Source of the DNA: Paramoeba atlantica
Taxonomy: Eukaryota; Protista; Discosea
Reading direction: 5' to 3'
DNA: 64,000 nt
Assembly: GCA_977017575.1 (NCBI GenBank)
Contig: CDRNVI010000145.1
Coordinates: 1-64,000, forward strand
In this document: positions 293 through 26,200 of the stretch, one piece after another
Layout of the letters: each line of letters begins with the position of its first letter
Position numbering within the stretch: the first letter of the stretch is position 1
Notes under the pieces: generated by a model
Told to the model about the DNA's origin: nothing
What the model saw: the letters and a program-made list of their open reading frames with translations, nothing else
Database searches by the model: none
Made by a program: the position numbers and the translations under genes

Positions 293-323
<31 letters not shown>

Positions 324-461
324 GGGGAAGAGAGAGAGAGAGAAGAGAGAAAGAGAAGAGAGAAAGAGAAGAGAGAAAGAGAAAGAGAGAAAGAGAGAGT
401 GAAAGAGAAGAGAGAGAGAGAAGAGAGAAAGAGAGAGAGAGAGAGAGAAGAGAGAGAGAAG

Positions 462-497
<36 letters not shown>

Positions 498-4761: not shown

Positions 4762-7395
4762 CTAAAATTTTGGTGAGACTTTTGTTCCTTGTTCTTTTTT
4801 CGGAGTCTCAAATAAAGAAAGAGATCGTTTGTAACAAATTTCCTGAACATATAAAAATAAGAACAGAAGCAAGGAGAAAATAAAAAAAAGAGAAAAAAAC
4901 CTCAGGAACTGAACGTTTTTGGAAAAATCCAAACAACAAAGAATTTTCACATTCAGGCAATGGATAGGGAAATTGTTGATATTGTAAAAACAAGTTGATT
5001 GATTCTCCAATTTTCTGTTTTTTTTTTTTGTTAAATTCTTTTTTCAAGACTAAATTACAAAAAACAAAAAAATGAAAAAGAAACCATGAGATAAGGTAAA
5101 TTAACAAATCCTTCTTCTGTTTTTGGCTGATTTCCATCGTACAGATATCTTAACTCTCTCAACTGTCAAATTTGTTTTAAAACAACAATGAAAAGATCAA
5201 ATCTTGAAAAATAAAAAGAAAATCAAAAAAAAAGAAAGAGAAAAATACCTTTGGAGCAAACCAAGGAAGAAGAGGTGGTTCTGAAGACTGGAACACATTT
5301 TGATAGTTTTTAAAATTCGATTCAGGAGATAAAATTTCATCCAACAATTCAAATCTCTTTTTGTACTATTTTTTTGTTTTCCATAAATCATTAATATTAA
5401 ACAATTTAAATTCACAAACAAAAAAGAGAAAAAAGAAAGGGAGAAAAATCAAAACTCTCAAATTCAAAGATTCCCACAATGGTTTGAAACGTTGAATTGA
5501 AGATTGATTCAATCCACTTATTACAGCTGCACCTCCCTCAAAATTTCGAAGCTTGTAAAAAAAAAAGGAGTCAAATTTAGAGAGAAAAAAGAGAAACAAA
5601 AGAAGAAACAAAAAAGAAGAAAACCTTGAAAAGTTTGGTTGCAAGTTTGATCATAAACATTAAATTCTGAGAACGATTTTCAGACTCACAAAATAGGATT
5701 GATTCAACAACCATTGATGAAATTCGATTGAATATTTCACTCATTGCCATAATATTTGGTGATCGAATATATTTCTCTCTTTTCTATTTGTAAAATAATA
5801 ATAAAAAAAAAGAGTCAAAGAAAGAAAAACATCAAAAAGAAAAGAAAAAAAAAGGAAAAAAAACCTGCCAAAAACTATCATAAAATTCATGAGGTCTTAA
5901 ATCTTTGTATCTTCGAAACATAAAGGAAGTTAACGTTTGTGCAACATGACGACTCGTTCCACAAGAACTCAAACTCATTCTTCCTTTCCAGATCTATTTT
6001 TCAACAAAAGAAAAAAATCAATAAGAATTTCTGAGGAGCTTAGGAACTCAGGATCTCAGAAGCTCAGGATCTCAAAGAGATCCGCCCTCAACCTCAATTC
6101 AAAGGTTTATCCAATCCAATAGAAAAAGATGTGTTTAGGGTTGGTGGGTTGTTTGAAATATTTGAAGGAAAGAAAAAGAAGAGAAAGAAAAAAAGAAGAA
6201 AAAAAGGACCAAAGTTGATTCGAAAGGGGTTGATTCCAAAGAATCCAAAAATTCTTCAATTGCTCTATTTTTGACAACAAGGTCAATACCCAAAGAATGA
6301 AAGAAAGAAAAAAAGAAAAAAGAAAATGAAAGAAAAACTTGGATAAAAGGGGATTAAAAGTTTGATAAAAAGATGTTAAAGTTTTTCTCCAAGAAAGAAC
6401 AATTTGAATAATTTGTTCTTTCTTTTCGTTTTGTTGTTCCTCTCCTTCTTTTGTGATTATCATCTCTTTCATTGTTTCCAAAAGTTTAAACTATTTTTTG
6501 ATTTTGAGTAATTGGGAATCGTTCATGAGTTGTTTTTTTTTGTGAAAGAGAGGGAGAGGAGAGGAGAGGAGAAAAGAGAAAAAAACCTGATCAATATCAA
6601 AAAAAGATTGTTCAAAACCAATAAAAAAAATCTCGATTTTCTCTGGAGATAAACCAACCAAATAATTTATAATCTCCAAATATGAATCACAACGAAATTG
6701 GGATTCGCTTTCTTCCTCTTCAAAACTCGAAAGAGACAACATGGGATATCGAGGAGAAGGACTTGAAAAAATAGATTTCAAATGGGGAGAAAGAGCTATA
6801 AATGGACTTGGAGAAGAACGGGGAGGAGAGGGAGAATAATGGCCAGAGTGGACAGAAGGAGAAAAACGAGGAGATTGATGAACGGAGTTTGGTTTGGATG
6901 GAGGAAAAGAAGAACTGGGAGTATAGGCAGATTGGGCAGAAGAAGGAAAAGGAAAAGAGTGGTGTGAATTTGGGTCAGAAGCAGAACGAGCAGAGGAGAC
7001 CTTTTTTTCTTCTTGTTGGTAAGAAGGTTTTTTAAGGCACATTTTTCTTCGAAAGCTCTTTTGAACTTCCTCTTTGGTCTTAGATTTGGAGGTGGTTTCA
7101 GGGGGTTGTTCATCAAAATCAAAGATTCCTTTTGGTTGAAGAGGTGGTGTTGAAGAAGGCTGTGGAAGAGGTGTAAAATTTTCCATGAGAAGATCTTTCT
7201 CCTGTGTTGTGAAAGAAAGGGTGAGGAAAACAAGAAAAAAGAATCAAACAACAACAAAAATTGAAATACCCAAGAACGTGAAGGTTGGCCAAAAGGAGGA
7301 CATTCATTCTTTCTTTTGGGGGGAGAAGTGTTACAACCAAGAAAATCAGGACGGAAGCGGGAATGGAGAGCCGTTTTTCGATTCAACTTGTCCAT
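4762..7395 (-). CDS. RasGEF (REM + CDC25) gene, copy 2, apparently complete
   Basis: ATG 7395 (MDKLNRK..PSRSW|gt); exons FRCDSYLEIINYL, FNRISSMVVESIL, LRNFEGGAAVISGLNQSSIQRFKPLW, SNFKNYQNVFQSSEPPLLPWFAPK|LRELRYLYDGNQ..GFVNL and EICYKRSLSLFE; stop at 4762-4764. Confidence 0.9.
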
Positions 7396-7480
7396 TGCTT
7401 GAAACAGACAAAAGAAAAAAACAGAATAACCAGACAAGTTTCAGGGGCTAGGATCACAAATTGCTTCAAAACAATCACAA

Positions 7481-7740
7481 CCAGAAGTCCAAAGCCCTCT
7501 CCCAGTGTCTCCGTTTGCACTGTTCTGCGGTCGTTCCGGTCCCAAAAAAAGCAACAAAACAAGACCAACAAACAGACAAAAGAAAAAAACAGAAAAAACA
7601 GACAACCCACCCAGAAGTCCAAAGCCCTCTCCCAGTATCTCCGTTTGCACTGTTCTGCGGTCGTTCCGGTCTCAAAAAAGCAACAAAACAAGACGACCAA
7701 CAAAACACCAAAACAAGAAAAAAGCGCAATGGGTCCAAAA
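7481..7740. repeat. 130-bp two-copy tandem duplication upstream of RasGEF copy 2
   Basis: ccagaagtccaaagccctctcccagt[g/a]tctccgtttgcactgttctgcggtcgttccggtc starts at 7481 and at 7611; the period is not a multiple of 3. Confidence 0.9.
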
Positions 7741-8356
7741 ACAAAAAAGGAAAACAAAACGTGCCTTCTCAAAAAACAAAAACGCTTATTACCAAAAGTT
7801 GAAGCGTTGAATTAGGTTAGAAATTTTTTGGAATGAGGCGTTTTTGTTTTTGCCAAATCAAAAATAGGGTTCAAAAACGTATTAATAGGGTCCAAAAAAA
7901 ATTAGCCCAAATGATTTCCCTAAAATTTTTTTCCCCGCACACTAGAAATGGATGAATGGATAAAATAAAAGGATGGTTTGATAATTGAATGGATGATTTG
8001 AGAGAGATTTTTGGATTCAAGGGGTTGGTTGATTCTTTTTTTTGAAATCTTTTTATTTACAATGACTTTTTATTTTCGACACACCAAAATTTCTTTTTTT
8101 TCGTTCTTTCTTTCGATCAGTTGAGTTGTACTACTTTCAAGCCTCAAACAGATCAATCACAGGAAGACTCGAGATGGTTTACAAGGCCTTTTTAGAAAAA
8201 GGAAAACTAAAAAAGAAAACACGTCTTTCTTCAAGAACAAGAACGTTCAACGGACACTTACAAATAAAGACATTCAAAACAAGACAACCCCTCAGGTTCA
8301 AATCCCAAACAAACAAACATTCTTTCAAAACACTTCAGGTGACAACCCAATACAAT

Positions 8357-11079
8357 CTAACCCTTCTCAAGTAAAGAAAGAGATTGTTTGTAACAAATTT
8401 CCTAAACATTTTCCATCAAAATGATGTGAGTCTCGAAAAAAAAAAAAGGGTATTTTGAAAGAGAAAAAAACCTCAGAAATTGAACGTTTTTGTAAAAATT
8501 TCAACAATAATGTATTGTCAGGAGAATGGGGAAAATCGTACCAAAATTGTTGATATTGTAAAAACGAGTTGATTGATGATCCAATTTTCTGTTTTTGTTA
8601 CTTTTCGTTCAGTCCTTTTTCAAAACGAAATTTACAAAAAACAAAAAAATGAAAAAGAAACCATGAGATAAGGTAAGCTAACAAATCCTTCTTCTGTTTT
8701 TGCTTGATTCCCATCGTACAAATATCTTAACTCTCTCAACTGTTTAAATCATCAGTTGGTTTGAAAACAAAAAGAAAAATAATAGTAAAAAATAAATAAA
8801 AAAAAATAAAAAAAAAAGAGAAAAACACCTTTGGAGCAAACCAAGGAAGAAGAGGTGGTTCTGAAGAATGTAACAAATTTTGATAGTTTTTAAAATTCGA
8901 ATCAGGAGATAACATTTCTTCAAACAACTTAAATCTCTTTTTGTACTATTTTTGTTTTTATCAATATTTACAACAATTTAAATTCACAAACAAAAATAGA
9001 AAAAGAAAAAACAAAACTCTTGAATTCAAAAGTTTCCACAATGGTTTTAAACGTTGAATTGAAGATTGATTCAATCCACTTATTACAGCACCCCATCCCT
9101 CAAAATTTCGAAGCTTGTAAAAAAAAGAGTCAATTGAAAGAAGAGAAAGAAGAGAGAAAGAGAGAAACGAAAAAAGAAACAAAGAAAAAGAGAAAAAAAA
9201 GAAAAAAAGAAGAAAACCTTGAATAATTGAGTTGCAAGTTTGATCATAAGCATTAAATTCTGAGAACGATTTTCAGACTCACAAAATAGAATTGATTCAA
9301 CAACCATTGATGAAATTCGATTGAATATTTCGCTCATTGCCATAATATTTGGAGATCGAATATATTTCTCTTCTTTCTATTTGTCAAAAAAGTTCATTTA
9401 AAAGAGTCAAAGAAAGTAAAACATCATAGAAAAAAAAAGGAAAAAAACCTGCCAAAAACCATCATAAAATTCATGAGATCTTAAATCTTTGTATCGTTGG
9501 AACATCATGGAAGTTAACATTTGTGCAACATGACGACTCGTTCCACAAGAACTCAAACTCATTCTCCCTTTCCAACTCTATTTTTTTCAACAAAAAATTA
9601 AAAAATCTCCAAAAAGAGAATTCAAATAATCCCAGGAAAGACCTCAGGCATAAAAAAAAAAGAGAGAAAAAGATGTGTTTAGGGTTGGTGGGTTGTTTTA
9701 AATATTTGAAGGAAAGAAAAAGAAGAGAAAGAAAAAAAGAAGAAAAAAAGGACCAAAGTTGATTCGAAAGGGGTTGATTCAAAAGAATCCAGAAATTCTT
9801 CAATTGCTCTATTTTTGACAACAAGGTCAATCCAAAGAAAGAAAGAAAGAAAGAAAGAAAAAGAATAGAACTTGGATAAAAGGGGATTAAAAGTTTGATA
9901 AAATGGTGTCAATATTTTCCTCCAAGAAAGAACAATTTGAATAATTTGTTCTTTCTTTTCATTTTGTTGTTCCTCTCCTTCTTTTGTAATTATCATCTCT
10001 TTCATTGTTTCCAAAAGTTTAAACTATTTTTTGATTTGATTAATTGGGAATTGTTCAAAAAAAGAGAAAAGAGAGAGAAAAAGAAAAAGAGAAAGGAAAA
10101 GAAAAGAGAAAAGAGAAAAAAACTTGATCAATATCAAAAAAAGACTGTTCAAAACCAACAAAAAAATCCTTGATTTTCTCTGGAGATAAACCAACCAAAT
10201 AATTGAGAATATCCAAATATGAATCACAACGAAATTGACATTCGCTTTCTTCTTCTTCTTCAAAACTCGAAAGAGAGGGAGATGGAGGAGAAGAACTTTG
10301 ATTAGAAAAAATAGATTTCAAACGAGGAGAAAGAGCTACAAATGGACTTGAAGAAGAAGAAGGAACCACAAATGCACCAGAAGAAGAAGAAGAGAGAGGA
10401 GATCGACGAAAAGGCAATTTAGATGGAGGAGAAGAAGAAGAAGAAGAGGGAGAATCATAATCGGCTTGGACAGAAAAATATGGAGGTGATGGAGAATGAG
10501 AACGAGCAGAATCAGGTGCTTTGGTAAAACGAGGGGATTTACAAAAATATTCAGAAAGAGTAGAAGCAGAAGAGATTTTTTCTTCTTGGAGAGAAGGGAG
10601 TTTTTTCAGTAAAATTTTTTCCCGAAAGCTCTTTTGATCCTCCTCCTCTTTGATCTTTGATTTGATGGTGGTTTCAGGGGGCTGTTCATCAAAATCAAAG
10701 AAGTCTTTTTGTTGAAGAGATAGCGCTGAAGAAAATTGATTAATGTGAAGATCTTTGTCCTGTGTGTGGCGGAAAGAAAGTGTGAGGAAAACAAGAAAAA
10801 GTAATTGAAAAAAAATTGAACAAAAATATCTTACCCAAGAACGAGAAGTTGAGACAAAAGGAGGAATAAGTTCATTCTTTCTGTTGGGTGGAGTTTTACT
10901 CTCAAAAATAGATTTCAACCCTTTCTTTTTTGGGGGGGATTTTGAATCTCTCCTCCGCCCAGAAGGGGCCTAAAAAAAAACAAAAACCATTTTTCGATTT
11001 AGAATTCAAAAAGAGCTGAGAGATTTTGGGAGAACAAACTTACCGAATCAGAAAGTGAAACAGTAGGAAAACGTCTCAT
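8357..11079 (-). CDS. RasGEF (REM + CDC25) gene, copy 3, apparently complete
   Basis: ATG 11079 (MRRFPTVSLSDS|gtaagt), exon APSGRRRDSK..; same conserved RasGEF exons as copy 2; last exon EICYKQSLSLLEKG* with stop at 8357-8359. Confidence 0.9.
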
Positions 11080-11769
11080 TCCTCTCCGAAAACAAAAACC
11101 AAAAAAATGAACGTTCCAACCCCAACGTCTTGACGTTCCCGAAAACTCATCGAAATTTCAATGATATCCCACGAAAATTTATGATGTTTCCGAAATTTTT
11201 TGGCTTTTTGCGTCTGATGTGAAAATTAGTTCAAAAGAGATGAGTTCAAAAAAAATCACAAGGAAGAGGGGGCGTATCCTTCGTTCTTATCTGGTGATTG
11301 GACATCAGTGAACCATCTTGCTTGGGGAGATAGGATCCACACCTCTCGTCCCCCATCTCTGACGGCAACAAACACTGGTGGCATGATGACCTCAAGCAGC
11401 TCGAAGGTAACCGCCCTATCAGCTCCAAACCGACCCCCAGGTTCCGAAAAGAGAGAGGACCTTGCAGAAGACCGACTGAGAGCACCTGAAAAAATTCAAC
11501 ACTGTCAAAAAAGTGTCTCTCAAGTATCCCGAAAACCTCTCTGGTTGAGAACCATAGGATGTCCTAATTTTCAAAAAAATTTGAAGTCGTGACTTTTTTC
11601 TTTGTTTTTTTTTTTGAGTTTTGTGATTTTTCTTGTGGAAGCTGCTGTGTAGAGAAACAAAGAGAAAGTCTTTGACGATTAAATCGCAATCATTTTTAGT
11701 TTTTCTGACTCTACAACTCTTTCACCAAGAACGTGAACAACTCCTTCCTCCTCCCCCTCCTTATTATCC

Positions 11770-12738
11770 ATGGAAGACTCTCCCATTCAAAAAAAGAAAA
11801 GAAAGAAGAGGTCAGGACTTCTCAGACTGGTACGATATCTAAAAACGAATACAAAGCCAACATGGGAGCCCAACCCAAATTGTCTTCGTGTTAATAGCTC
11901 AGCTTATTTACAAGTTGAGCGACAGGGAAAGTGGTGTTATCGGGCCCATTTTCTCAAGGAAGTATTTACTCGCGATGAAATGAAGGATTTTCAACAAGCT
12001 CTGTTGGCCTGTCGTGAGACACATTGGGATCATTCAAATGACCCAACAAGAGGGGAGAGAGCCTTTATGTTTTGTGGTGAATGGAGGCAACGAGGTCACT
12101 CCACGATCCACCCTGCTGGAATTGGGGGGCGTTATGAAGCTGAAGTGAAGCCAGTTCTGCAACCTTGTCTTGAAAACCTTGGGCGAACACTTTCTCAGAG
12201 GGTTCAAAGATATCGACCAGATATTTGGAATTGTTTAGAGGAAAACAACTTGCTGGAACGAAATTTTGGAATCTTTCACTTATTTATGTGTCCTGCTGGA
12301 AGATCAATTATGCATTACGACAGGAATGATTTTATTTCTGTTTTGGTTATGATCCATTTGGATGATGACCAACAAGGTGGGCTTGAGATTGGGGGTATTG
12401 ATCTTGCTTTTAATTTAAAAATTGGGGATGTTCTCATTTTGGACACTGACCAACTGTGTCATGGAACAGAAGAAGGTTATGACGATAGTTTGGAAGATGT
12501 TTTGTCTGTTTCTGCAACCGATAGATTGGTTGGCCTTTTTATTATCCACCGATCTTATTTACGACTTTTTGGTGTTGATCCAAACACTCTTTGCCGGGAG
12601 AAAATTGAAGCTCTGACCATCCCTGTACCTCCTCCACTGAAAAAGAGAGAGAAAGTGGGGGAACAAACCCCCTCTTGTCCTTCTTATTGTAACAAACTCT
12701 CCTCCTCCTCAACAACCTCTCCTTTCTCCAAAAAATAA
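11770..12738 (+). CDS. TET/JBP-type 2OG-Fe(II) dioxygenase, 322 aa, single exon, N-terminal basic NLS-like stretch
   Basis: HxD (HYDRND, H at 12313), GGL-x-GDVLILD strand, distal His (LCHGT, 12460) and 2OG-binding Arg (DRLVGLF, 12523); KKKRKKR near the N-terminus; in-frame stop at 11734-11736 upstream of the ATG. Confidence 0.8.
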   Translation: MEDSPIQKKKRKKRSGLLRLVRYLKTNTKPTWEPNPNCLRVNSSAYLQVERQGKWCYRAHFLKEVFTRDEMKDFQQALLACRETHWDHSNDPTRGERAFMFCGEWRQRGHSTIHPAGIGGRYEAEVKPVLQPCLENLGRTLSQRVQRYRPDIWNCLEENNLLERNFGIFHLFMCPAGRSIMHYDRNDFISVLVMIHLDDDQQGGLEIGGIDLAFNLKIGDVLILDTDQLCHGTEEGYDDSLEDVLSVSATDRLVGLFIIHRSYLRLFGVDPNTLCREKIEALTIPVPPPLKKREKVGEQTPSCPSYCNKLSSSSTTSPFSKK

Positions 12739-12792
12739 AAATAAAATAAAAAGAGGAAAAAAATGGTTTGGGTTGTGTTTGTTTCTGTGGTT

Positions 12793-13580
12793 TTATTGGC
12801 TCTGATTTTTCTCAGCTGCAAGTGAAACAATAAGATTGGAGACTTCTGAACGTTCTTTGTTTTTGGTGAACCATGATTGAGTCAGAAAACTATCTGGTTT
12901 TTCCTCCTGGCTCAAATGCAACAGAAATTCCTCAACATATTTCATGACAAAGACTCCACAATCCACATCATTTTCCTGTTGGGGTACAATGGGTTTCACC
13001 ACTTCCAATCTTTCCAATCTCCCCAATCTCTTGGGAAGAAAGTTTGACTGAAAAAGCTTCTTGATTTTTTCAATAACAGTGTCGACACGGTGTGACAAAA
13101 ACCCTCTCATTGAATCAAGGTGCCACATTTTTTGTTCTGGGATACTAAGAACGAATAAAGACCAATGGGAATCCTTAATGTTGAAAGGAAGAAACAAATA
13201 GTCGATTTTATCATAGTCCAAGAACCAGCGTGAAAGAATTGAATAATCGTGTTCCAAATTCTCCAACTTGGTGAGAAAGAATGTAGAGAGACAGAGAAAT
13301 GAGAAGGCAGTTGTTTGTTTGTTCTACAAAATAAAATTAAAAAAAAAATTAAAAAAAAAACCCTTTAAAAAAAAAAACCCTTTAAAAAGTAAAAAAATGA
13401 AAAAACAAATACTTTCATCAAATACTTCAAGTAGAAATCAATTAGTGAATCATTCAAATAAGCGTTAGATACCAAACTATTGAGATCCTTTGGAAAAATT
13501 TCAACAGAAGACCTATCGAGATTAGGGTACAGTAAAATTCTTTTTTGTGGGTCAGAGGATAAAAACTTCTCCGTTTCAGG
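12793..13580 (-). other. Ulp1/SENP (peptidase C48) deSUMOylase-like domain
   Basis: LLYP..DLNSL..AYLNDSLIDFYLKYL, STFFLTKL, LPFNIKDSHWSL (His), HLDSM (Asp), PQQENDVDCGVFV (Gln, Cys); triad intact. Confidence 0.92.
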
Positions 13581-16500
13581 CTATTTTATTTGTGGTGAGC
13601 AGATAACAGAAAAAAGAGAAGAGAAAAATGAGAAACCAACCAAAAAAGAATACGATTTTTTAAAGTTCAGTTGTTCTGAATATTTACGCAGCCCTGTTGT
13701 GAAATTCCTTTTCTCTCCCTCTCTCTGCCTTTCCTTTTTTTCTCTTACTTTTTTCTCTTTTTCTCTCTTGATTTTCTCTCTTTTTTTTTTCTCTCTCTCT
13801 CCCTCCCTCTCTCTCTCCCTCTCTTTCCTCTCTCTTTCCCTTTCTCTTTCCTTCTCCTCTTCTCTCTCACTTTCCCAAGTTGTTTTACTTTCCTCCCTCT
13901 TCCTCTTCCTCTTTCCTTCCTCCTCCTTCCCTTTCTCTCTCTCCTTCTCCTTCTCCTTCTCTTCTTTCTTCACCTTGTTCTCCCTCTTCTTCCCTTTCCC
14001 CTCCCTTCTTACAATTTTTTTCTCAACATAAAAATCCACCAAAAATTGAGAAAGGGATAATTCTGGCAGTACCCTCTTTAAAATTCTCTCGTCAGGTTTC
14101 CTGGCATCAGATGATGTGGCTTGGCGATATTCTTCATTTGGTGCATTTTGGACCAGGTGAATTTTGAGTTTCGCATTTTCGGTTTTGTATTTTTCATAAA
14201 GAAATTCAACAATTTTCAGTTGAACCCGTGCATCAAGTAAAGCATCATGGCATTTTCCCCGTAATGATCTATCAATCGAAAATGTTGTACAAATATGGTC
14301 GACACTCCATTTTGGGTAACGATCCAAAGAGCCTTTGTCTCGTCCAATCTCGAAATATAACTCCTTGCTATCAAAAAATCGTACAAATGAAGGAACCTGA
14401 ATCCCATAACGCTGACAGTCATTCTTCAATGTTGGTTCATCGCAACCCTTACCATTATGAGCAATCATCATCACAAGTGGTTTTTCTTTTGTCCGGAGAA
14501 GATTTAAAAATCGAAAAAATCGAGGAAAGACTTGATCAAATGTATCCCTTTTTCGGAGAAACTGATGTGACAATCCGTGAATGTTGTAAGCCTGGGAAGT
14601 TATTGGAATCTCCTCCCCTATTGTTTTTGGTATTGTGAGTTGTATTTCTAATTAAAAAGAAAAAAGAGAAAAAAGGAGAAGAGAGAAGAGAGAGGAGAAG
14701 AAAAAATACCTGGATTAATTGCTTCATGAAATTCAAGTTTTTTTTTGGATGACTCTCCAAATTTCCAAGCAACAAGGGCAAGAGAAACAAATGATTGCTT
14801 ATTACTTCCCTTCGTTTTACCTGTTGTCTCACCATCCCAAACAACAAACCCACCAAAACAGTTATCATCCTTTTTACCAACTACACTTTTACAAAATTCC
14901 TCCACACTTTCACAAGATGCATCCTCAATTTCAACCACACTTTCACAAGATCTGTCCTCAATTTCAACCACTTGTCCTTCGAGGCTTGAGAAGTCTGGTT
15001 CATTTGGAGGAGTAAGAGTGACATTCGAATTCTTTGATGTTTCAGTTGGAAATGGATGTTCACCACTATGTCTTTTAACAAGATGGTTATTTAAATAGCC
15101 AAGAAATCGGTACTGTTAATAATTATTGTATTAGAAAAAAAAAAAGAAAAAAATTCTTGAATTTTCCTTCTTGAAAAAAAAAAAAAAAATCCAAACTTGC
15201 TTTGGGCAATCTTCCCATGGACATGGATAAAGTTGTGATGGGAAAGAATCAGATGTTTGAAGCGTTTGAACAATTCGATGTGATTCATCACCTCCAACAA
15301 CTAAGCAGGTCATTTGTCGAGTTGTCAATCTTTTTCGGGTGCAACGGTATGCATCAGCAATCATTTTAGCAAGAGCAACTTGCTCTGGAGTTGCAGATGG
15401 AAACAGAGAAGAAGAAGATTTTTTTCTTTTCTCCTTAGTATAAGAAATCAACGAAGAAAGCTCAGAGAAATCAAAGATAACTCCTGTTTGGTCATTATAC
15501 TTCAAAGCAGATTTCTTGCCAAGAGTGCGTTTGGGCATGGCATACAACCGATTTGGGGAGAATTTTTTGATCAATTCAATCCATCCATGTGACTCTAAAA
15601 AAGCATACTCATAAAGAGATGGGTATCGGATCTGTAGAAAAAGACAAAAAAACAAAAGAAAACACAAAGAAAAATGATATAAGATGAAAGAAAAATGACC
15701 AAAGGATAGAGGAGGTAAACAAAAAGAGAGGAAGAGGGAAAAAAATATTGGAGAAAAGAGCATAAAAGAAAAGAAGGTGTAAAAGAGAAAAAAGAAGAAA
15801 AGAAAATAATAAATAAACAAAAACCTTGCTTCGAATCACAGAAAAGTGATTTTCACACAAATTGGTTCCTAACATTGATGTTCTTCGATGGGTCATAAAA
15901 TACACATCTTCTTTCTTCAAAAAGGTGACTAAGTTGTTTAAAGTCTGAAGAGTCTATTGAAAAAAAAAAAAAAGAGATAAATAACATTTTTGCAAAAACA
16001 ATTTTTGGGAAAACAATTAGACCACAAAAGTTGAAAAGAGAGTGTGTGGTGTGTCATGTAATTCATTTAATTAAATAATAAATAATAAATCAATTGAAAG
16101 AAAATAAAATACCTGGTTAAAGAACTCTGTGGTTGTAAACTGTCTTTTTGATTGGGCCTGGTAGGTCTCGAGTCGTTTTATCAATCCTGTTGCTGTCTCA
16201 ATCTTACAATCAATGTCCCAAGAGTTGTTTGAAAAAAGATCATGAAGACAAAGCAACATTTCAAGATACTTGACAAGAGCAAAGACTTTCTTTTTTTCCC
16301 TTTCATTCGCAGTGTTCTGACCAAATTCCTTGATTTTGGTGGCAGCACGGAGCAAATTCATCACAGGGACAAGATTTTGCTTATCTGATGGACATATATC
16401 ATCTAACTTCAAAGCAAGTTGTAATTCAACGGAATTGGACCACCAGTTCGAGAGGGTTTTCATCGAAAATTTCACTCCATCAATTTGAATCAGTCGATTG

Positions 16501-18750
16501 AGTAAGTTATTTCGACCATTCTTGACCAGATGAACATAATCAAAAAAATGTAAAACATCCTTCATTTTCGTTGAATAATCAAGAGAACCTGAAAATCCAT
16601 CAGAGCTGGTCCACATAACAACGATTTCCTTTTCCTTCATTTCATTTGAGATCTTTGTAAACACTTCAAACAGCTGGGTCCCTGTCAGCGATATTGTTGG
16701 AATAAATGTAACTGGGAATGCAATGGTACCACAATTCGAAATAAAAAAAATTTGACACACCTATTAATACTTTTGTTTTAAAACAAAAGAAAAAGAAAAA
16801 GAGAGAAACACACAAACAACAACAACTAGTGTTTTAGTTTTAGTTTTTTGTTTGTGTATATTTTTAAGGATTTATGAAAACAATTATTTGGAAAACAAAA
16901 CAAAAAAAACCTTCTTTGCAAGTTCTGGTGTATAGTCAACCAATAGATTTGGATCCAATTCGCAATCTTTTAAATATTTGTCAACAAGACCCACAAACCG
17001 TCCTGATGTACGTAAATATACAAGACCAGATCTGATCTCCATTTCATCACAAATGAGCCCACCTCCTTGAAGATCATGGCCATCGATTCGTTGTTTTTTG
17101 AGCATTTGAACAAGGATCTGAATCCGTTGGGTAACTTGAGCACCTTTATCATCAAACCATTGATAAGGCTCAACAGGAGGAATGAGTCGACGGAGAGTTG
17201 AATCAGCTGGAATACAGAGGTTTGTTGTTTTAAGATCATAATGAAAATCCCCTTTTTTTCCCTCGCATCCTTTACCACGCAAAAGATTAATCACTCGCTT
17301 ACCCCCATAAAACTGAAGTGTTGCAAAGAAATTTAAAATCTCTTGGTCCCATCGATTTCCATTTGGAGTATTGTTCAAAAGCACCTCAAGTTGGGTTTGA
17401 ATAAATTTCCCATTGAAGGAGTTCACCCATTCATCACCATACTGTTCAATGACTTGATGTACAAGAAGAGAGAGAGGATGACAAGAGGCTGGAGGCTGTT
17501 CTTGGTTCTTCTATTGGAACACAAGCAAAATAAAGTCAGTTAAAAAATCTTTACTTTTTTATCATACAGGATGATATTTTTTTAAAAAGATCTCAAAAAA
17601 AAAAGACAAACACATACCATTAAATATTCTTGATTTGCATTCCACTTTTTCAAGTATTGGATTGCTTGGTGACATGAGGGACAAAAGCGACCTGCAGCTG
17701 AAGAACTACCTTCTTGACGAACCTTCACAGAATCAAAAGAAAAAAAATGTAAATATTTCTTTTCCTATCCACCACACACACTATCCCCATTCCATCATCA
17801 TCATCACACAAATCATCCCTCATCAATAAATATTTTATCAATAAAAAGAAATAGATAAAAAAAGAGAACCCGTTCACAAAATGAAAAAAAAAGTTTTCCA
17901 GCTTGAAGAACTCCAATTACTCTGGACCCAGACTTCGATTTCTCCGCTATATATTTCCGCTTCACAACTCCATCAGAATCTGCAATTCTTTGTGCATTCT
18001 GAACAACTGTCGCAGTATCAGAGATTCCAGGGCACAAATCATGGTGATGATCATCAATAAACTCAAAAAAGGGGGAAAAGAATAATGGCTTCTCCTCCTC
18101 CTTTGTAATCATCATTGGTTCAGGACTCAACTCACTCCTGTCATGGGCAAGCCCCACCTTCTGATGTTTCTTCCTTCTTCTAAAAAAGAAAAATGGGGGT
18201 AAGAAAAATATTTCATTTTTCCCCTCAAATACACTTTTTTTTCTCAAAAAACACTCTCAGTGAACACTAAAAAAGAAAAGAACACCACTTACCTTCTGGG
18301 TGGTGGCAACCCAACTTCAAACAAAGTTGTTTGCTTCCAAGTTCTTTTTAGAAGATGATGACAAAATGATTGGATAAAGGGATCCAATCTTGGTTTGATT
18401 CCAGTGGAATGTTTCAGAGGGTATTTTTTCCAGTTCCTCACCCTTTTGACATCAAAGAGTTTAGATATCAATGGTGGGATATAAGTGGAAAATTTTGCGC
18501 TCTCAATTGATCGAATCTCTGGGCAACATTGAGAACATTTCGCGACAATCTCATTAAATGAGATCGCATCATACTCCTTCTCATCCTCACTCAACTTGTC
18601 AAAATGATGGTAAAGGGTCAGTGCAAGGTATTGGTAAACAACAAGAAACTCACGTTTCTTTGGGAGTCCATCAGGGATTAAATCCATTTTTCTCTCTTGG
18701 AAACACTGTGAAAAAGGAGAGGGAAGTTCAGTCAACTGAGAATAGTGGCA
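12793..18750 (-). CDS. Spliced polyprotein (>=1601 aa): N-terminal region, P-element-type transposase, C2H2 finger, DEDDh exonuclease, KE-rich linker, Ulp1/SENP protease; start codon unresolved upstream of 18750
   Basis: Exons 18750-18293, 18179-17870, 17764-17618, 17510-16911, 16760-16113, 15953-15825, 15631-15197, 15112-14710, 14617-13641, 13580-13413, 13323-12793. All introns are GT..AG, all phases are compatible, total 4806 nt with no internal stop. Confidence 0.85.
14200..14850 (-). other. DEDDh 3'-5' exonuclease domain
   Basis: ExoI VVWDGETTG (D ~14835); INPG|EEIPITSQAYNIHGL across the splice; ExoII IAHNGKGCD; ExoIII HDALLDA. Confidence 0.88.
15065..15225 (-). other. C2H2 zinc finger split by an intron
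   Basis: CPWEDCPKQ|YRFLGYLNNHLVKRH (C-x4-C-x12-H-x4-H), formed only by the 15197/15112 splice. Confidence 0.75.
15500..17400 (-). other. P-element/THAP9/Galileo-type transposase catalytic region
   Basis: FYGGKRVINLLR..PADSTLRR; ICDEMEIRSGLVY (D ~17047); TSSDG (D ~16600); FDYVHLVKNGRNNL; DKQNLVPV; LGTNLCENHFSVIR (E ~15853). Order and spacing fit the P-element DD-E fold. Confidence 0.85.
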
Positions 18751-19187
18751 CTAATTTTAAGAAAAAAAAGAAAGGGAAACCAAAAACTACAGAAGATCCA
18801 ATTTCAAGTGTGTTTTCACTGCAGAACTCCACCAGTGTTTGGAGGACAATGAAAGAGGGGAGAGGGTGGGGGTTGTTTCAGGGTGGAACCACACTCTGAG
18901 TGTTGATGAGATCTTTTGGTCTGGTGGAGAGTAGTCAAGAGTTTGTAGATGCTGAAAATTGGAATTTTTGCAAGTAATTTTAATTATTTGTTCACGATAT
19001 TTGTTCCTTCTCAAAGATTTGCAGGGAACAGAAACTCTCAAGGAATTTCTGATCACAACAGCACAAGCAGACCAAACTTTCAAGAACAAATGAATCACCA
19101 CAGAATCTCCAAAATCTTGACCACAAACCAATTTTCCTATCTCTCACTTGTTGTATGGTGCCAACCCTTTCGCAAACCCACAGCAGA

Positions 19188-19255
19188 TTCGCCCAGTTTC
19201 GCCCAGTTTCGCCCAGTTTCGCCCAGTTTCGCCCAGTTTCGCCCAGTTTCGCCCA
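19188..19255. repeat. 10-bp tandem repeat (GCCCAGTTTC)x6 plus partial unit
   Basis: Six perfect units at 19191-19250 followed by gccca; GC-rich in AT-rich context, upstream of the transposase gene. Confidence 0.95.
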
Positions 19256-19623
19256 ATGCCACACCAACGAAAGTTCGTTCTTTTTCGTGACCTTCGCTCA
19301 AATGAATCCCAATATTTCACTGAGATTGAAAGAATCCTATGATAATCAAAACGTCAAAATCACATTCCTGAATTGGATGTCAAAGAAACTCTTGGTCATT
19401 TGGCTTGAGTTAGAACCCCGTGAAAAATTTAGCCAAAATGGTTGCCCTAAATTTTTTTTCCTTTCCTTTCCTCCCACAAAGAAATGGATTGAAGAAATGG
19501 GTTCGATTGAGATTTTGAATCAAGGTGAATCTTTTTGAAATCTTTGTTTGTCAATGATGACATTTTATTTTACTCCTTGATCCACTCAAAATGAAAATAA
19601 ATTGATTTCTTTCTTTTGATCGC

Positions 19624-22335
19624 TCAACTCATCTCAAATAAAGAAAGAGATTGTTTGTAACAAATTTCCTAAACATTAAAAACTATGTGAGTTTTGAAAA
19701 AGAGAGAAAGAAAAGAAAATATTTGAAGAGAAAAAAACCTCAGGAACTGAACGTTTTCGTAAAAATATCAACAACAAAGAATTGTCAGAAGGATGGGGAA
19801 AATCATATCGAAATGATTGATATTGCAAAAATGATTTGATTGATTCTCCAATTTTCTGTTTTTGTTACTTTTTATTAATTCTTTTTTTCAAGACGGAATA
19901 AAACAATAAAAAATAAATGAAAAAATGAAAAAGAAACCATGAGATAAGGTAAATTAACAAATCCTTCTTCTGTTTTTGATTGATTCGCATCATATAAATA
20001 TCTTAACTCTCTCAACTGTTCAAATCATCAGTTAGTTTGAAAATAATAAAAAAAAATAAAAAAAAAATTAAAAAAAAAGAAAGAGAAAAATACCTTTGGA
20101 GCAAACCAAGGAAGAAGAGGTGGTTCTGAAGACTGGAACACATTTTGATAGTTTTTAAAATTCGATTCAGGAGATAAAATTTCATCAAACAATTCAAATC
20201 TCTTTTTGTACTATTTTTGTTTTCATCAATATTTACAACAATTTAAATTCACAAACAAAAAAATAGAAATAGAAAAAAATAAAACTCTTGAATTCAAAAG
20301 TTTCCACAATGGTTTTAAACGTTTAATTGAATATTGATTCAATCCACTTATTACAGCTGCACCTCCCTCAAAATTTCGAAGCTGTCAAAAAAGAGTCCAA
20401 AATATTAAGAAATGAGAGAGAGAGAGAAAGAAAAGAGAAATAAAAGAAGAGAGAAGAGGAGAAGAACCTTTAACAATTGAGTTGCAAGTTTGATCATAAA
20501 CATTAAATTCTGAGAACGAGTTTCAGATTCACAAAATAGGATTGATTCAACAACCATTGATGAAATTCGATTGAATATTTCACTCATTTCCTTAATATTT
20601 GGTGATCGAATATATTTCTCTTCTTTCTACATGTTTAACAGAGTCAAAGAAAGAAAAACATCAAAAGGAAAAGAAAAAAAAGGAAAAAAACCTGCCAAAA
20701 ACCATCATAAAATTCATGAGGTCTTAAATCTTTGTATCTTCGAAACATAAAGGAAGTTAACATTTGTGCAATATAGTTACTCGTTCCACAAGAACTCAAA
20801 CTCATTCTTTTCCAAATCTATTTTTTTCGACAATTAGAATTTCTGAGGAGCTTAGGAACTCAGGATCTCAGGAACTCAGGATCTCAAAGAGATCCGCCCT
20901 CACCCTCAATTCAAAGGTTTATCCAATCCAATAGAAAAAGATGTGTTTCGGGTTGGTGGGTTGTTTTAAATATTTGAAGGAAAGAAAAAGAAAAAAAGAA
21001 GAAAAAAAAGACCAAAGTTGATTCGAAAGGGGTTGATTCCAAAGAATCCAAAAATTCTTCAATTGCTCTATTTTTGACAAGAAGTCAATACCAAAGAATG
21101 AAAGAAAGAAAAAAAGAAAAAAGAAAATGAAAGAAAAACTTGGATAAAAGGGGATTAAAAGTTTGATAAAATGGTGTTAATATTCTCCTCCAAGAAAGAA
21201 CAATTTGAATAATTTGTTCTTTCTTTTCATTTTGTTGTTCCTCTCCTTCTTTTGTAATAATCATCTCTTTCATTGTTTCCAAAAGTTTAAACTATTTTTT
21301 GATTTTGAGTAAATTGGAATCGTTCATTTGTTGTTTTTTTTTGTTAAAGAGAGGGAGAGGAGAGGAGAGGAGAAAAGAGAGAAAAACCTGATCAATATCA
21401 AAAGATTGTTCAAAACCAATAAAAAAAATCTCGATTTTCTCTGGAGATAAACCAACCAAATAATTGATAATATCCAAATAAGAATCACAACGTAATTGAT
21501 CGCCTGAATCAGAAAAAGAGAGAAGAGAGGGAGAAGAAAGAGGAGGAGGAGAAGGAGGAGGAGAATCTTGAGTTGAAAAAAGAGATTTCCAACGAGGAGA
21601 AAGAGCTAGAAGTGGACTTCCAGAAGAAGGAAAATCTGATTGGGAGGAAGGATAAGAGAAAGGAGATAGGGACAGAAAAGAGAGGCGTGAACTTGAAGAA
21701 CGAGGCGATGTGCAAGATGAAGGAGAAGGAGTGAGAGCAGGAAGTGATTGGAGAGAGGGAGGAGATTTGGGTTGAGGAGAATGAGAACGAGGGCGGATCA
21801 CACCCTCTTCTTGTTGTGATGGGAGAGAAGAGATTTTTTTCATGAAAAGTTTTGCGTGGGAGCTCTTTCGGTTCTCCTCTTTGGACTTTGCTTTGGTTAT
21901 TCTGGGGTTCCCCTGGTCAAAATCTTCGTCTTTTAGTTGGAGGTACTTTGGAGGAGGAAAAGGTTCAGTGGTTGTTGTCTGTGAAAGAGGGATGAGATCA
22001 AAAAGAAAGAAAGAAAAAAAAAAAGTGGTTCATTTTTACCCAAGAAGGCGAAGATGGGACAGAGACAGAACGTTCCTTTCGTCCGGCTTTCTTTCTTTCG
22101 TCCTTTCTTTCATGGAGAGTTTTACTGCGAACTTTCTTTCTCTCTTTCTTCTTTCTTTGGGGGGGTTCTTTTCCCTCAAGGTCCGACTTCCCAAAATCCA
22201 GTTCCTAAAGATGAGAAAAAGAAAAACAAGATGAATTTTGAGGCAGAGATCAAACTGAAGGGAAAAAAAAACTCTCACCAAAGAAACAGAAAGTGGGCTG
22301 GATGGGAGAGTGTTTTGTCTCGTTCGTTTTTCCAT
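19624..22335 (-). CDS. RasGEF (REM + CDC25) gene, copy 4, apparently complete
   Basis: ATG 22335 (MEKRTRQNTL..SVSL|gt), exons ELDFGK..SPSW| and TTTTEPF..LRCDSYLDIINYL; conserved CDC25 exons; last exon EICYKQSLSLFEMS* with stop at 19624-19626. Confidence 0.88.
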
Positions 22336-23272: not shown

Positions 23273-26200
23273 ATGAATTGTGTTTTTCTTTGTCAGGAGA
23301 GGAGTTCTTCTTCTTCTTCTGGCTTTGCTTTTGATGGTGGTGGAGGTCAAAAACGAAGATTGTTTTTTTTGACCTTTTTTGTGGTTGTTCTTCTCATTTC
23401 GCAAGGAGAGGGAGGTATTTTGACCATACAAGATAACAATCAAGATCAAGCTGCGCCAACCGCAGTCTTCTATTATCGAATTGAATCGAACGAGTCAATT
23501 CCCCAAGCTATCCTCAATCTTCCAACTGGAAGTTGGTCTTTTCCAACGGAAGATGAACCTCTTTGTGTCTCCGATGATCCTGCTTCATGTCCCATCACAG
23601 AGATTTCAATCACCAATTGGTTTGTTTTTTTGTTTTTTGTTTTTTTTTGTTTTTTTGTTTTTTTGTTTTGTTTTTTTTTGTTTTTTTTTGTTTTTTTTGT
23701 TTTTTATTTCTTATTTTCTTGGTCTCCCAATTTCTGTTTTTTTTTACCTTTGAACAAAAGCTTTTCTGTCCACCAAAATATTTCGTGTTAATGTTTCAAA
23801 AAGGGATGATGTTGAACAAGAGTATTATCACCAATCGATTGAATTTATCACTCCATACGAAATGATCAATTTTTTGGGTTATGGTAAGTTTTTCTTTTGT
23901 GAAAAATAGAATTTTTGTTGGGTTCTCAAAACAATTAATCTTCCTTTTTCCACAGTCCAATTTACTGGTGATCTCAGGAGTGTTAAAAATGACATTGGTG
24001 AGGATTTTTGATTACCAATACCTACTTTAGTCTCTTGATCATTTTTTTGATGTTTTTTTTTTAGAATCTCTTCGTTTAATGTATCGTAGTGGAACTGAAA
24101 CAATCGGAGGGAATGAGTATGAAGGAAATGAAATTTCAGCAGGACCCGTCTATGTTACCGAAGATGGAATCCTTCGAAACAGTTGGGCTGTTACAACCGA
24201 TCAAAGTTACGATTTCGATGAACCAGTTGAAGATTGTTCGACTTCTGCTCTTTGTCCCCTGAATACTCCAATCCCTTGTCTTCTGAATAAGGATTGTTCT
24301 GCGAACGAGTGTCCGTTGTTACCTCAATGGTGGGAAGAAGCCACTTTTTTCGATGAGTATGGGTGTTATGCTCGACAAGGAGCTGATTACAAAACTGACC
24401 CAGCCAGAGACGAAGCAGTGGTTGAAGCAATCACAGGAAGAAAACAATGTTGTTTGCCAGAGCTTCCCAATCAATTCCCAACTGAAGAGTATTATCCTTA
24501 CAATAGTTATGGAGATACAAAGAAAGAAATCCCTTGTTCTTTGTTACCTTATTGTTCTGATGATGTATGGTCTGAAGATCCTTTTCATACAACGATGCCT
24601 GATGGAATGGATTATACATACTTTTATTTGGATAATGATGGTCGTATTTCGAATCTTGATCCATCAGATATTGTTGTTGAAGATGGAAGTGACTTTGTTC
24701 CTGACTTAAGAAGGAAGAAGTCTGCGATGTGTGATCCTGATATCTGGCCTCCTCGCCCTCGAAACGGACCTCGTTTGGATTTCTTCATTTCTGGGTATCG
24801 ATCACTTACTGAAGAAGATTTACCTTTTCCAATCCAATGGGGAGGTACTGGTTCAAATACTATCGATGGTCTGAAACAAACAATGCAAATTGGAACAATT
24901 GGATTCAAAAACTATGTTTCTGATGATGATTGGAGTGTGAAAGCTCTTGGTTTGAATCATGGTGGGACTGGAGGAACAACAGCTGAAGAAGCACGCCAAA
25001 ACCTCGTGTTGGGTCGATTAGCTCGTTTTGATACAATCGATGATTCCAATTGGAATGGTCGTGCTCTTGGTTTGTTGAATGGTGGGACTGGAAGTCGAGA
25101 ACAAGAAACTGCTCGTCGAAATTTAGGTCTTGGTCTCTCTTCTGTTGAAGGAATTGATTATGAAATTGAATTCAATCAACAAATTAGTGGTATTCAAGTT
25201 ACTGTTGATGCTCTTGGTGCTCTTGCTTTTGAAGATACCATTCGACCTGCACTTTGGAGTGGAGAGACCCTTCCTCTTGTTGATGGTGGTGTTGATGCCA
25301 GTAATGCGATGGATGCTCGTTACAATCTCCTTCTTGGTCAAATGGCTCTGTATGATTATATTGGAGATAATAATTGGATGGGACCTCCTCTTTCTGTTGC
25401 GAATGGAGGAACTGGTTCAACTTCTGTTGAAGAGATTGGTGATACTCTTGAACTTGGAGATTTAGCTTATCTTGATTATGCAACAGATTTTGTGTGGGGT
25501 GGGGATCCTTTAAGTATTGAAAATGGTGGAGTTGAAGCTACCAATGTTATTGATTCTCGTTTCAATCTTCTTCTTGGAGCTCTTGCGACTTTTGATTATG
25601 TTGGAAATGAACAATGGTTAGGACCTCCTCTTTCCATTGAAAATGGAGGAACTGGTGCGAACACTCTCGAACAAGCTGTTGATAATTTCGAACTTGGTCA
25701 AATGGCTTTTGTGGATGGAGTTGCTGATTATCTTTGGTCTGGTGATTCTCTCACAATGGTCAATGGGGGTCTTGAAGCAAACAATGCGATTGATTCTCGT
25801 TTCAATCTTCTTCTTGGTCATTTATCAACTCTCGATTATGTTGGGAATGAACAATGGCTTGGATCTCCTCTTTCAATCGAAAATGGAGGAACTGGAGCCA
25901 ACACTTTCGAACAAGTTGTTGATAACTTTGAATTGGGAGAACTTGCCTTTTTGGATGTTGTTGGAGATTCATTATGGAGTGGTGATTCTCTTAGTATTGA
26001 AAATGGTGGGTTCGATGCATCCAATGTGATTGATGCTCGTTACAATCTTCTTCTTGGTTATTTATCAACTCTCGATGCTGTTGGAAATGACCAATGGCTT
26101 GGATCTCCTCTTTCGATTGAAAATGGAGGAACTGGAGCCAATACTTTTGAAGAAGCTGTTGATAATTTCGAGTTGGGAGAACTTGCCTTTTTGGATGTTG

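Follow-up and report, generated by a model that had tools for sequence, protein, structure and literature searches.

Positions 11556 to 19422 of the 64,000-nucleotide stretch of Paramoeba atlantica DNA analysed here (hereafter, the window) probably represent one copy of a recently amplified P-superfamily DNA element in this amoeboid protist. Between paralogous RasGEF units there are two genes that converge, as originally predicted; the region is rich in tandem arrays, and the RasGEF domain (PF00617) is matched in unit 3 at E 6e-8. The interval first proposed for the element, 11770-19255, does hold both genes; it is slightly narrow, and the repeated unit extends beyond it on both sides. The setting is as follows:

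About 100 to 3900: RasGEF unit, more diverged than the others
4806 to 7325: RasGEF unit
8365 to 10893: RasGEF unit
19626 to about 22060: RasGEF unit
11556 to 19422, no strand assigned: candidate transposon (repeated unit) of 7,867 bp with both genes inside; copies on contigs L014 and L016
19184 to 19253, plus strand: subterminal array of 7 tandem 10-bp repeats, CAGTTTCGCC, 8 matches versus 1.6 expected
19423 to 19461, no strand assigned: flank resembling the paralogous RasGEF spacer (7896-7934, 87%), beginning exactly at the right end of the unit

The block with both genes probably acts as one repeated, mobile unit. The search for further copies that had been proposed with the original prediction returned one whole block and one right-hand 3 kb among the contigs of ENA assembly ERZ24900291. 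Specifically, L014 (656-8521) matches window 19425-11556, including both genes, at 99.2% identity with 36 differences and unrelated flanks, and L016 (7937-10944) matches window 19427-16435 at 99.3% identity, with a flank that differs again; a third contig, L015 (99.68% identity), is the window's own locus. Divergence between copies of the unit is 0.3-0.8%, and all three contexts share one identical right end, ...GAGTTAGAACCCCGTG; the left end is set by two copies only. Minor variation is seen in the subterminal repeat, of which L014 has two fewer copies owing to a 20-bp deletion. The presence of at least three near-identical copies at different sites in the genome marks this as an element that was recently mobile or duplicated, and three copies at least 99.2% identical, in unrelated contexts and with a sharp common right end, support the prediction of one unit, probably mobile, holding both genes.

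Duplication without transposition would be an unlikely source of these copies. Under such an explanation, a host locus in which a P-type transposase-exonuclease gene, by now domesticated, sits beside a dioxygenase gene of the host was copied a few times by segmental duplication through recombination, which would be in keeping with the many tandem arrays of the region, with the three copies known, and with the lack of terminal inverted repeats (TIRs) and target-site duplications (TSDs) at the common boundaries (neither was found at 11556/19422 in the window copy). Poly(A)-tailed contigs also show that the transposase family is transcribed, apparently as ordinary mRNAs. Against this stand the three unrelated flanks with exactly one common right end, the resumption of the paralogous RasGEF spacer at that end, as an insertion would give, a divergence of less than one percent, and the location of dioxygenase paralogues elsewhere inside TIR-bounded transposons. 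In addition, L014, and only L014, carries a 13-nt exact inverted match of the right tip 66-78 bp outside the left boundary, suggesting that the left tip may be missing from the window copy. Transposition of a P-type element thus remains the preferred explanation, and its coding content is listed below:

12796 to 18687, minus strand: multi-exon gene of about 1,567 aa in about 10 exons (model from stop-free segments and in-frame GT..AG junctions)
17816 to 18687, minus strand: N-terminal exons 1-2, inside the repeated unit and 94-100% conserved in L016
15819 to 17510, minus strand: P-superfamily transposase core, exons 3-5, with an HTH-like region and an RNase H-fold DDE domain with helical insertion
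17051 to 17034, 16607 to 16593 and 15857 to 15840, minus strand: catalytic triad, with first D in CDEMEI, second D in SSDGF and E in CENHFS, respectively
15068 to 15229, minus strand: C2H2 zinc finger (YPCPWEDC...NNHLVKRH), split by an 84-nt intron
14229 to 14839, minus strand: DEDDh (DnaQ-type) 3'-5' exonuclease domain, with motifs Exo I at 14839-14819, Exo II at 14462-14445 and Exo III at 14252-14229
12796 to 13580, minus strand: Ulp1/C48 cysteine protease domain in two exons (PF02902, E 3.7e-22, 79.7 bits versus a cut-off of 20.7)
11770 to 12738, plus strand: intronless 2OG-Fe(II) dioxygenase ORF of 322 aa with a basic N-terminal KKKRKKR
12310 to 12330, 12454 to 12474 and 12520 to 12552, plus strand: dioxygenase HxD motif, second His and Arg strand, respectively

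As modelled, the minus-strand gene encodes, in order, an N-terminal region, a P-type transposase, the C2H2 finger, the DEDDh exonuclease, a K/E/R-rich linker and the Ulp1 domain. Two relatives that lack introns, P0007 and P0011, are collinear with the model over 17495-14268 (exons 3-8), and the model agrees with 58 of 65 family-conserved columns, including the D, D and E of the triad, which align with invariant or near-invariant positions. Exons 1-2 matched no Pfam family at E of 0.1 or below, and Pfam detected no THAP domain either there or in eight long relatives. Assignment of the transposase to the P superfamily, as originally predicted, is supported by both Pfam and predicted fold, which point to P and not to KDZ/Plavaka. 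For example, of eight relatives scanned for TNP-like_RNaseH_N (PF21787; cut-off 24.6 bits), seven score 28-52 bits (best E 1.3e-13) and the other reaches 24.3, just short of it. Exon 3 of the window falls below that cut-off (21.1 bits, E 4e-4) because an intron splits the domain. Likewise, a Foldseek search with the AF2 model of P0007, the closest full-length relative (pLDDT 82), returned the Drosophila P element transposase (6pe2/6p5a) as best match at E 7e-13 and TMt 0.64-0.65, versus E of at least 2e-5 and TM of at most 0.35 for the next best. As regards a GTP-binding insertion domain, the alignment spans 518 columns and the segment separating the second D from the E includes a helical insertion, although Pfam TNP-like_GBD had no match in the relatives scanned.

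The fusion of this transposase to a zinc finger and an exonuclease also held up, on the evidence of the stop-free segments, the motifs and the collinear intronless relatives. The C-x4-C...H-x4-H pattern of the finger is kept in the consensus of the transposase family, and the exonuclease presents WDGETTG (Exo I, DxE), AHNGKGCD (Exo II, D) and CHDALLDA (Exo III, Hx4D). Pfam RNase_T is matched in the window exon at E 0.0015, and the family profile finds PolC/epsilon exonuclease domains at E 6e-18. Altogether, 111 relatives of the transposase were found, the named sources being Protostelium, Rhizamoeba, Pompholyxophrys and Naegleria; relatives from amoeboid protists have the transposase, C2H2 finger and exonuclease in one protein, and of the eight long ones scanned, five carry RNase_T at the C-terminus. 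As read from its predicted translation, then, the large gene is a member of a protist lineage of P-type transposases in which a C2H2 finger links the transposase to a 3'-5' exonuclease of the DnaQ-like kind.

At the C-terminus, a C48 domain with its His, Asp and Cys in place (DSHWS, HLDSM and VDCGVF, 13173-12949) is real, and is probably a SUMO protease. It is probably fused to the exonuclease-bearing gene, as had been claimed, but here the claim depends on a predicted 60-nt GT..AG intron (13640-13581), which takes out one in-frame stop. Ulp1 (C48 protease) domains occur in plant MULE/KAONASHI and Zisupton transposases. These likewise place C48 on a DNA transposase, but in other superfamilies. 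No Ulp1 domain was found in the other members of the transposase family examined, so the domain looks like a recent addition to the window element.

The plus-strand gene is, judging by its modelled fold, a 2OG-Fe(II) dioxygenase with a double-stranded beta-helix and intact HxD...H...R ligands; across 11 family members, H182, H231 and R252 are invariant and D184 is at least 90% conserved. With these ligands, the transposase D/D/E, Exo I-III and the Ulp1 H/D/C, the catalytic residues are all present, as originally predicted. The further description of the enzyme as TET/JBP-like stands for the fold and ligands, but the TET/JBP affinity itself is weak and lies below the PF12851 threshold. Among Pfam families, Tet_JBP (PF12851) alone recurs, in 4 of the 11 members (best E 0.005, 16.5 bits versus a cut-off of 34.9), and it has no match in the window dioxygenase. 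The AF2 model is of pTM 0.64 and pLDDT 62, and at that pLDDT the PDB structures matched by Foldseek at E ~1e-5 are PolD and FTO, at the top, together with CcTet and PHD2; CcTet, at rank 6, has the highest query-normalised TM (0.42), with similar scores for PolD, FTO and PHD2.

It is conceivable, if somewhat unlikely, that the enzyme is not a DNA-base oxidase but instead hydroxylates proteins or, in the manner of AlkB/FTO, acts in repair or demethylation, in which case any anti-silencing reading would be wrong even if the element is mobile. The leading structural matches to PolD and FTO, the high placing of PHD2, the far-below-threshold Tet_JBP scores and the best PDB sequence match, gamma-butyrobetaine dioxygenase at E 0.3, all lean in that direction. 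They are countered by the recurrence of Tet_JBP alone among Pfam families, the CcTet score, viral proteins with JBP1/TET domains at ranks 4 and 18 of a BFVD structure search, and an association with transposons that parallels that of fungal TET/JBP genes (PMC12730594). Membership of the dioxygenase in TET/JBP is thus weakly supported.

The relatives of the two genes bear on how they came to be together. The original prediction had named the separate occurrence of dioxygenase and transposase as evidence against it, and such separation is found in part: dioxygenase paralogues on L017 and L019 have no transposase nearby, and no dioxygenase neighbours the other transposase-family members (L006-L011). 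The dioxygenases form an orphan group that comprises about 10 clusters of sequences; a P0001-type paralogue is present on nine contigs, and the family also occurs by itself in another multi-copy unit, which has a sharp boundary of its own. On L018, 96-nt TIRs surround a piggyBac transposase and the dioxygenase paralogue P0146, and on L002, 59-nt TIRs surround a DDE_Tnp_4 (Harbinger) transposase, a dioxygenase and a SWIM/SAP protein. Since the paralogues with a transposase neighbour sit inside TIR-bounded elements of other superfamilies, movable cargo fits better than a host gene. On the preferred reading, the large gene of the window element additionally gained its C-terminal Ulp1, and the element carries, tail-to-tail with it, a separate dioxygenase gene of a small family whose members are also cargo in piggyBac and Harbinger elements.

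A different history, which we consider highly unlikely, would have two elements side by side, the dioxygenase being part of a separate small mobile or repeated unit that landed beside or inside the end of the P-type element and was then copied jointly, as a passive passenger that plays no part in the life of the P element. The absence of dioxygenases from the transposase relatives would fit, as would the family's occurrence with piggyBac, with Harbinger and alone; moreover, such genes have been described as passing passively from one transposon lineage to another (Kojima 2025, PMC12730594). The L014 copy also tolerates a dioxygenase frameshift (a 2-bp insertion at window 12282), indicating that a copy can persist without the gene. 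The physical arrangement argues otherwise. The dioxygenase lies 214 bp inside the common left boundary, and 55 bp separate it from the stop codon of its convergent neighbour; between the two genes no boundary of an internal repeat was detected, and L002, L012 and L013 show a comparably close convergent arrangement. A single element with the dioxygenase as cargo is favoured.

Dioxygenase cargo has fungal precedents. TET/JBP-encoding DNA transposons of fungi were reportedly described by Iyer et al. in 2014. Many DNA-transposon superfamilies in fungi have captured dioxygenase genes (PMC12730594), and the window element resembles these carriers, so far described only in fungi. In both settings, the dioxygenase is a separate ORF in unrelated DNA-transposon superfamilies of one genome, and the fungal Harbinger-type carriers, like L002, encode a third, non-Myb protein; by contrast, the known elements are all fungal with bona fide TET/JBP enzymes (PMC12730594), whereas the dioxygenases here fall below the Tet_JBP threshold. 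Similarly, KolobokD is a DNA transposon encoding a DEDDh (DnaQ) exonuclease for which 3'-end trimming in transposition has been proposed (Kojima and Bao 2022, PMC9587614). It belongs to the Kolobok superfamily, occurs in animals and has a TREX/ERI1-like exonuclease (PMC9587614), whereas the present one best matches PolC/epsilon-type domains by family profile and is fused to the transposase.

With the P element and THAP9, the window element shares an RNase H-fold DDE core with helical insertion, TNP-like_RNaseH_N and an HTH-like pre-catalytic region, but their THAP domain, 31- or 13-bp TIR and 8-bp TSD were not found in it. Relative to the P element (2.9 kb; PMC7776569), it is much larger (7.9 kb), resides in a protist and adds a second gene as well as C2H2, DEDDh exonuclease and, probably, Ulp1 domains fused to the transposase. 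As originally stated, no P-superfamily element with exonuclease, Ulp1 and dioxygenase cargo was found described in the literature, but to call it a new transposon type, as the original prediction proposed, is too strong. The superfamily is known and this is one of its lineages, equipped with accessory modules; transposon-borne dioxygenase cargo is likewise a known phenomenon, and a DEDDh exonuclease in a DNA transposon has a precedent too (PMC12730594, PMC9587614).

A mechanism can be proposed in which the DDE core would cut and paste the element and the fused exonuclease would trim the 3' single-strand ends left by P-type cleavage, which in the P element are 17-nt 3' extensions (PMC7776569). 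A nuclear-targeted dioxygenase might oxidise a base mark carried by the DNA of the element, and Ulp1 might strip SUMO from chromatin or repair factors, so that the two together may counter host silencing. In its fullest form, to which we give less than even confidence, this would be an undescribed protist P lineage with a permanently fused exonuclease processing long 3' overhangs, one member of which has an anti-silencing module of base-oxidising dioxygenase and deSUMOylase; the dioxygenase would have been exchanged among P, piggyBac and Harbinger elements in one amoeboid genome, as the first non-fungal transposon-borne TET/JBP-like cargo.

If this is true, transposon capture of DNA-modifying dioxygenases is not peculiar to fungi but has recurred independently in a distant eukaryote, and dioxygenase cargo extends to P and piggyBac, superfamilies not implicated before. 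The work further delimits a clade of P-type transposases in protists that have a DnaQ-like exonuclease built in, which offers a concrete, testable idea for how the unusual 17-nt 3' overhangs of P-type cleavage may be handled. Young, with its reading frames intact, the element offers experimental work in amoebae a candidate active transposon.

The gene pair sits in AT-rich, eukaryotic DNA of 30-40% GC, with short introns, inside an array of tandem units that were identified as RasGEF genes (PF00617, E 6e-8). The layout of this array bears out the original placing of the pair between units 3 and 4, which are spaced 8.7 kb apart versus 1.0 kb for units 2 and 3. Both convergent genes, a large one on the minus strand and a dioxygenase ORF on the plus strand, are held within a 7,867-bp repeat (11556-19422), and the description of a two-gene unit was essentially correct. 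Elsewhere in the window, positions 24079-37299 (plus strand) form one unbroken ORF of 4,406 aa, composed of ~240-bp (80-aa) units in tandem, 65-88% identical, that share a "...NGGTG(S/A)..." motif reminiscent of fibre-like repeat proteins; its sole Pfam match, DUF3373, is sub-threshold, and the gene is also present on an allelic contig, L015. Another tandem array fills positions 37425-64000; its ~7-8 units, each ~3.5 kb long and 78-92% identical, code for ankyrin-repeat proteins and are read from the minus strand.

The element has recently been amplified. A database protein matching exon 3 of the large gene was traced to contig ctg2445l (L014) of the same genome (ENA assembly ERZ24900291), where positions 656-8521 align with window 19425-11556 at 99.2% identity over 7,886 bp. 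This common block includes both genes, and the flanks of L014 are unrelated to those of the window. Among the 36 differences between the two copies are a 2-bp insertion in L014 (at window 12282), which shifts the reading frame of the dioxygenase, and the loss there of two units from a subterminal tandem repeat with a 10-bp period. The right 3 kb recur at 99.3% identity on a third contig, L016 (ctg3537l), up to the contig end and beside yet another flank, and L015 (ctg3937l) represents the window's own locus (99.68%). These copies support the proposal that the pair is a mobile unit.

The right end, ...GAGTTAGAACCCCGTG (window 19422), closes the shared sequence in all three contexts. From 19423 onward the window matches a paralogous RasGEF spacer (7896-7934) at 87%, and this match offers an internal control, much like an empty site, for the right junction. 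The left boundary at 11556 is defined by just two copies; unique sequence makes up the adjoining 660 bp on the left, and the left flank (10894-11555) did not align with the paralogous RasGEF spacer at 7326-7895. Direct and inverted repeat searches across 10500-20500 returned low-complexity matches only, with no terminal inverted repeat (TIR) in the window copy, and the same was true of fuzzy searches across the window for the inverted right tip. A target-site duplication, of 8 bp or any other length, was found at neither copy. Beyond the shared left boundary of L014, at a distance of 66-78 bp, 13 nt of the right tip recur exactly in inverted orientation (GGGGTTCTAACTC); the chance of such a match at that position is estimated to be of the order of 1e-5. 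This points to a candidate short TIR comparable to that of zebrafish P elements, which is 13 bp long (PMC7776569), and would mean that the window copy lacks its left tip. Some 170-240 bp inside the right end, at 19184-19253, is the 10-bp tandem repeat CAGTTTCGCC, present in seven copies; its copy number varies among the element copies and it has no counterpart near the left end. These repeats may be transposase binding sites.

The large gene is composed of stop-free segments running from 18750 down to 12796 on the minus strand, which can be joined through in-frame GT..AG introns of 50-360 nt into a model of ~1,567 aa. Domain searches employed exon pieces and relatives as queries. Using exon pieces, Pfam identified Peptidase_C48 (Ulp1; E 3.7e-22), RNase_T (E 0.0015) and TNP-like_RNaseH_N (E 4e-4), and the diagnostic motifs of each part were located in the sequence:

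Diagnostic sequence motifs of the large gene (12796-18687)
Minus strand, transposase D, D and E: CDEMEI, SSDGF and CENHFS
Minus strand, C2H2 finger: interrupted by an intron
Minus strand, exonuclease motifs I-III: WDGETTG, AHNGKGCD and CHDALLDA
Minus strand, Ulp1 triad: DSHWS, HLDSM and VDCGVF

The P-type DDE core, DnaQ-type exonuclease and C48 protease are intact in this gene, as had been claimed for its catalytic residues. The exonuclease and Ulp1 parts are probably fused, although the join needs a predicted 60-nt intron (13640-13581) that takes out one in-frame stop. A long K/E/R-rich, low-complexity linker lies in frame between the exonuclease and the Ulp1 exons (13584-14100, minus strand), and its complement forms the CT-rich repeats that dominated repeat searches.

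When a 208-aa exon was used in a length-limited search, the sole return was a near-identical protein from another element copy; an unrestricted HMMER search with exon 3 recovered 111 relatives. Named sources include Protostelium nocturnum and Rhizamoeba saxonica (Amoebozoa), Pompholyxophrys punicea and, distantly, Naegleria gruberi. Together with the gene content, the closest relatives point to an amoeboid protist as the host. TNP-like_RNaseH_N was matched in all eight long relatives scanned, seven of them above the Pfam cut-off (the exception, P0011, scored 24.3 bits, slightly under the cut-off of 24.6), and five of the eight possess a C-terminal RNase_T, one of them with a SAP domain in between. 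The closest relative, P0007, is 849 aa long and ~40% identical. Because P0007 and P0011 are intronless and collinear with window exons 3-8 (17495 to 14268), the fusion of transposase, C2H2 finger and exonuclease is a conserved architecture and not a splicing artefact. Likewise, the window model fits 58 of the 65 near-invariant columns of ten relatives, including the D, D, E and C2H2 ligands. Pfam detected no Ulp1 domain in the eight long relatives, and neither Ulp1 nor a dioxygenase adjoins the transposase relatives on contigs L006-L011. Four of these contigs, L008-L011, are environmental and encode a 1,201-aa transposase-exonuclease relative; each ends in a long poly(A) run, and they vary from one another at the 5' end alone. 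They were ruled out as element copies, being poly(A)-tailed transcripts, and are uninformative on element ends. Poly(A) ends on several environmental contigs indicate that the transposase family is transcribed.

The P element transposase was recovered by fold search alone and not by sequence searches of the PDB, where single transposase exons found no match and a family profile matched only through its exonuclease and zinc-finger parts. Residues 1-700 of P0007 were modelled with AlphaFold2 from a 42-sequence alignment (pLDDT 82, pTM 0.80), and the model best matches the Drosophila P element transposase (6pe2 and 6p5a; E 7e-13, target-normalised TM 0.64-0.65), followed by ISCth4, Hermes, RAG1 and Transib (E>=2e-5, TM<=0.38). 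Judged by this predicted fold, the window transposase is a member of the P superfamily, as originally proposed, and does not group with KDZ/Plavaka. Pfam found no THAP domain in the exon pieces or the eight long relatives, and no match to a GTP-binding domain.

The plus-strand ORF (11770-12738) encodes 322 aa and belongs to a tiny family of about ten clusters among 5.8 billion proteins. H182, H231 and R252 are invariant in the family and D184 is almost so, and the iron and 2OG site is intact. A moderate AlphaFold2 model (pLDDT 62, pTM 0.64) matches many 2OG oxygenases at E ~1e-5, with PolD and FTO at the top and Coprinopsis CcTet at rank 6, the latter having the highest query-normalised TM (0.42). 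In a viral structure library, JBP1/TET-domain proteins came 4th and 18th in a list of otherwise generic oxygenases. Tet_JBP was the sole recurring Pfam family, matched by four of the 11 members, which scored 13-16.5 bits versus a cut-off of 34.9; the window protein itself had no Pfam match to it, and a profile search to widen the family returned close kin only, with no bridge to annotated TET/JBP proteins. Since Tet_JBP scores are sub-threshold and structural matches mixed, the protein is best labelled a 2OG-Fe(II) dioxygenase with weak TET/JBP affinity; the dioxygenase part of the original assignment stands, but a place among the TET/JBP enzymes is not established. Near the N-terminus, the basic stretch KKKRKKR hints that the protein may be directed to the nucleus.

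The wider dioxygenase family shows the behaviour of transposon cargo. For example, the paralogue P0146, from the same assembly, adjoins a 594-aa piggyBac transposase (PF13843), both within 96-nt inverted repeats that are 92% complementary (L018, 7141-7236 and 11085-11180). This ~4-kb element (L018 7141-11180; ctg3775l, ENA ERZ24900291) has no obvious TTAA duplication at its arm ends, and a second piggyBac fragment lies directly upstream (5314-6438). A homologue from JGI metagenome contigs, P0003, has a DDE_Tnp_4 (PIF/Harbinger) transposase on one side and a SWIM/SAP protein on the other, and 59-nt inverted repeats enclose the three genes (L002, 120-178 and 3473-3531). The 3.4-kb Harbinger-type element (L002 120-3531) is also seen on L003-L005 and L013 from JGI metagenomes, and the "TA" at both of its flanks recalls the PHISTA elements of rust fungi, which carry TET/JBP and duplicate TA. 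A P0001-type paralogue, 56% identical to the window dioxygenase in amino acids, is present on nine of the assembly's contigs, in a repeated unit that differs from the window element (L001 9423-11462, L017 10079-12120) and whose left boundary, CCACTTTRGGTTAAAATTC..., is sharp and common to the copies; no recognisable transposase, P-type included, lies within 10 kb of it in L017. A 14-nt inverted match in L017 was dismissed as an element end, as it is not at the boundary, and the unit often adjoins LINE-like reverse-transcriptase fragments. Finally, the paralogue P0145 lies beside a GPCR gene. From these contexts, neither is bound to the other: the dioxygenase gene also occurs apart from the P-type element, and the P-type family without the gene.

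The same loose pattern of gene and element has been reported in fungi, where TET/JBP genes are carried by 11 DNA transposon lineages and passively transferred between them, and where Harbinger carriers hold a non-Myb third gene (Kojima 2025, PMC12730594). P and piggyBac are absent from those carrier lineages, all of them fungal (PMC12730594). The claim of a new transposon type was overstated; the element is better described as a new lineage and architecture inside the P superfamily, with a type of cargo already known in fungal transposons. The element would move by cut-and-paste transposition. When P elements are cleaved, 3' extensions of 17 nt remain (PMC7776569), and the fused exonuclease may act on 3' single-strand ends, much as has been suggested for KolobokD and its DEDDh gene (PMC9587614). 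The dioxygenase and Ulp1, in turn, would counter silencing based on chromatin or base modification.
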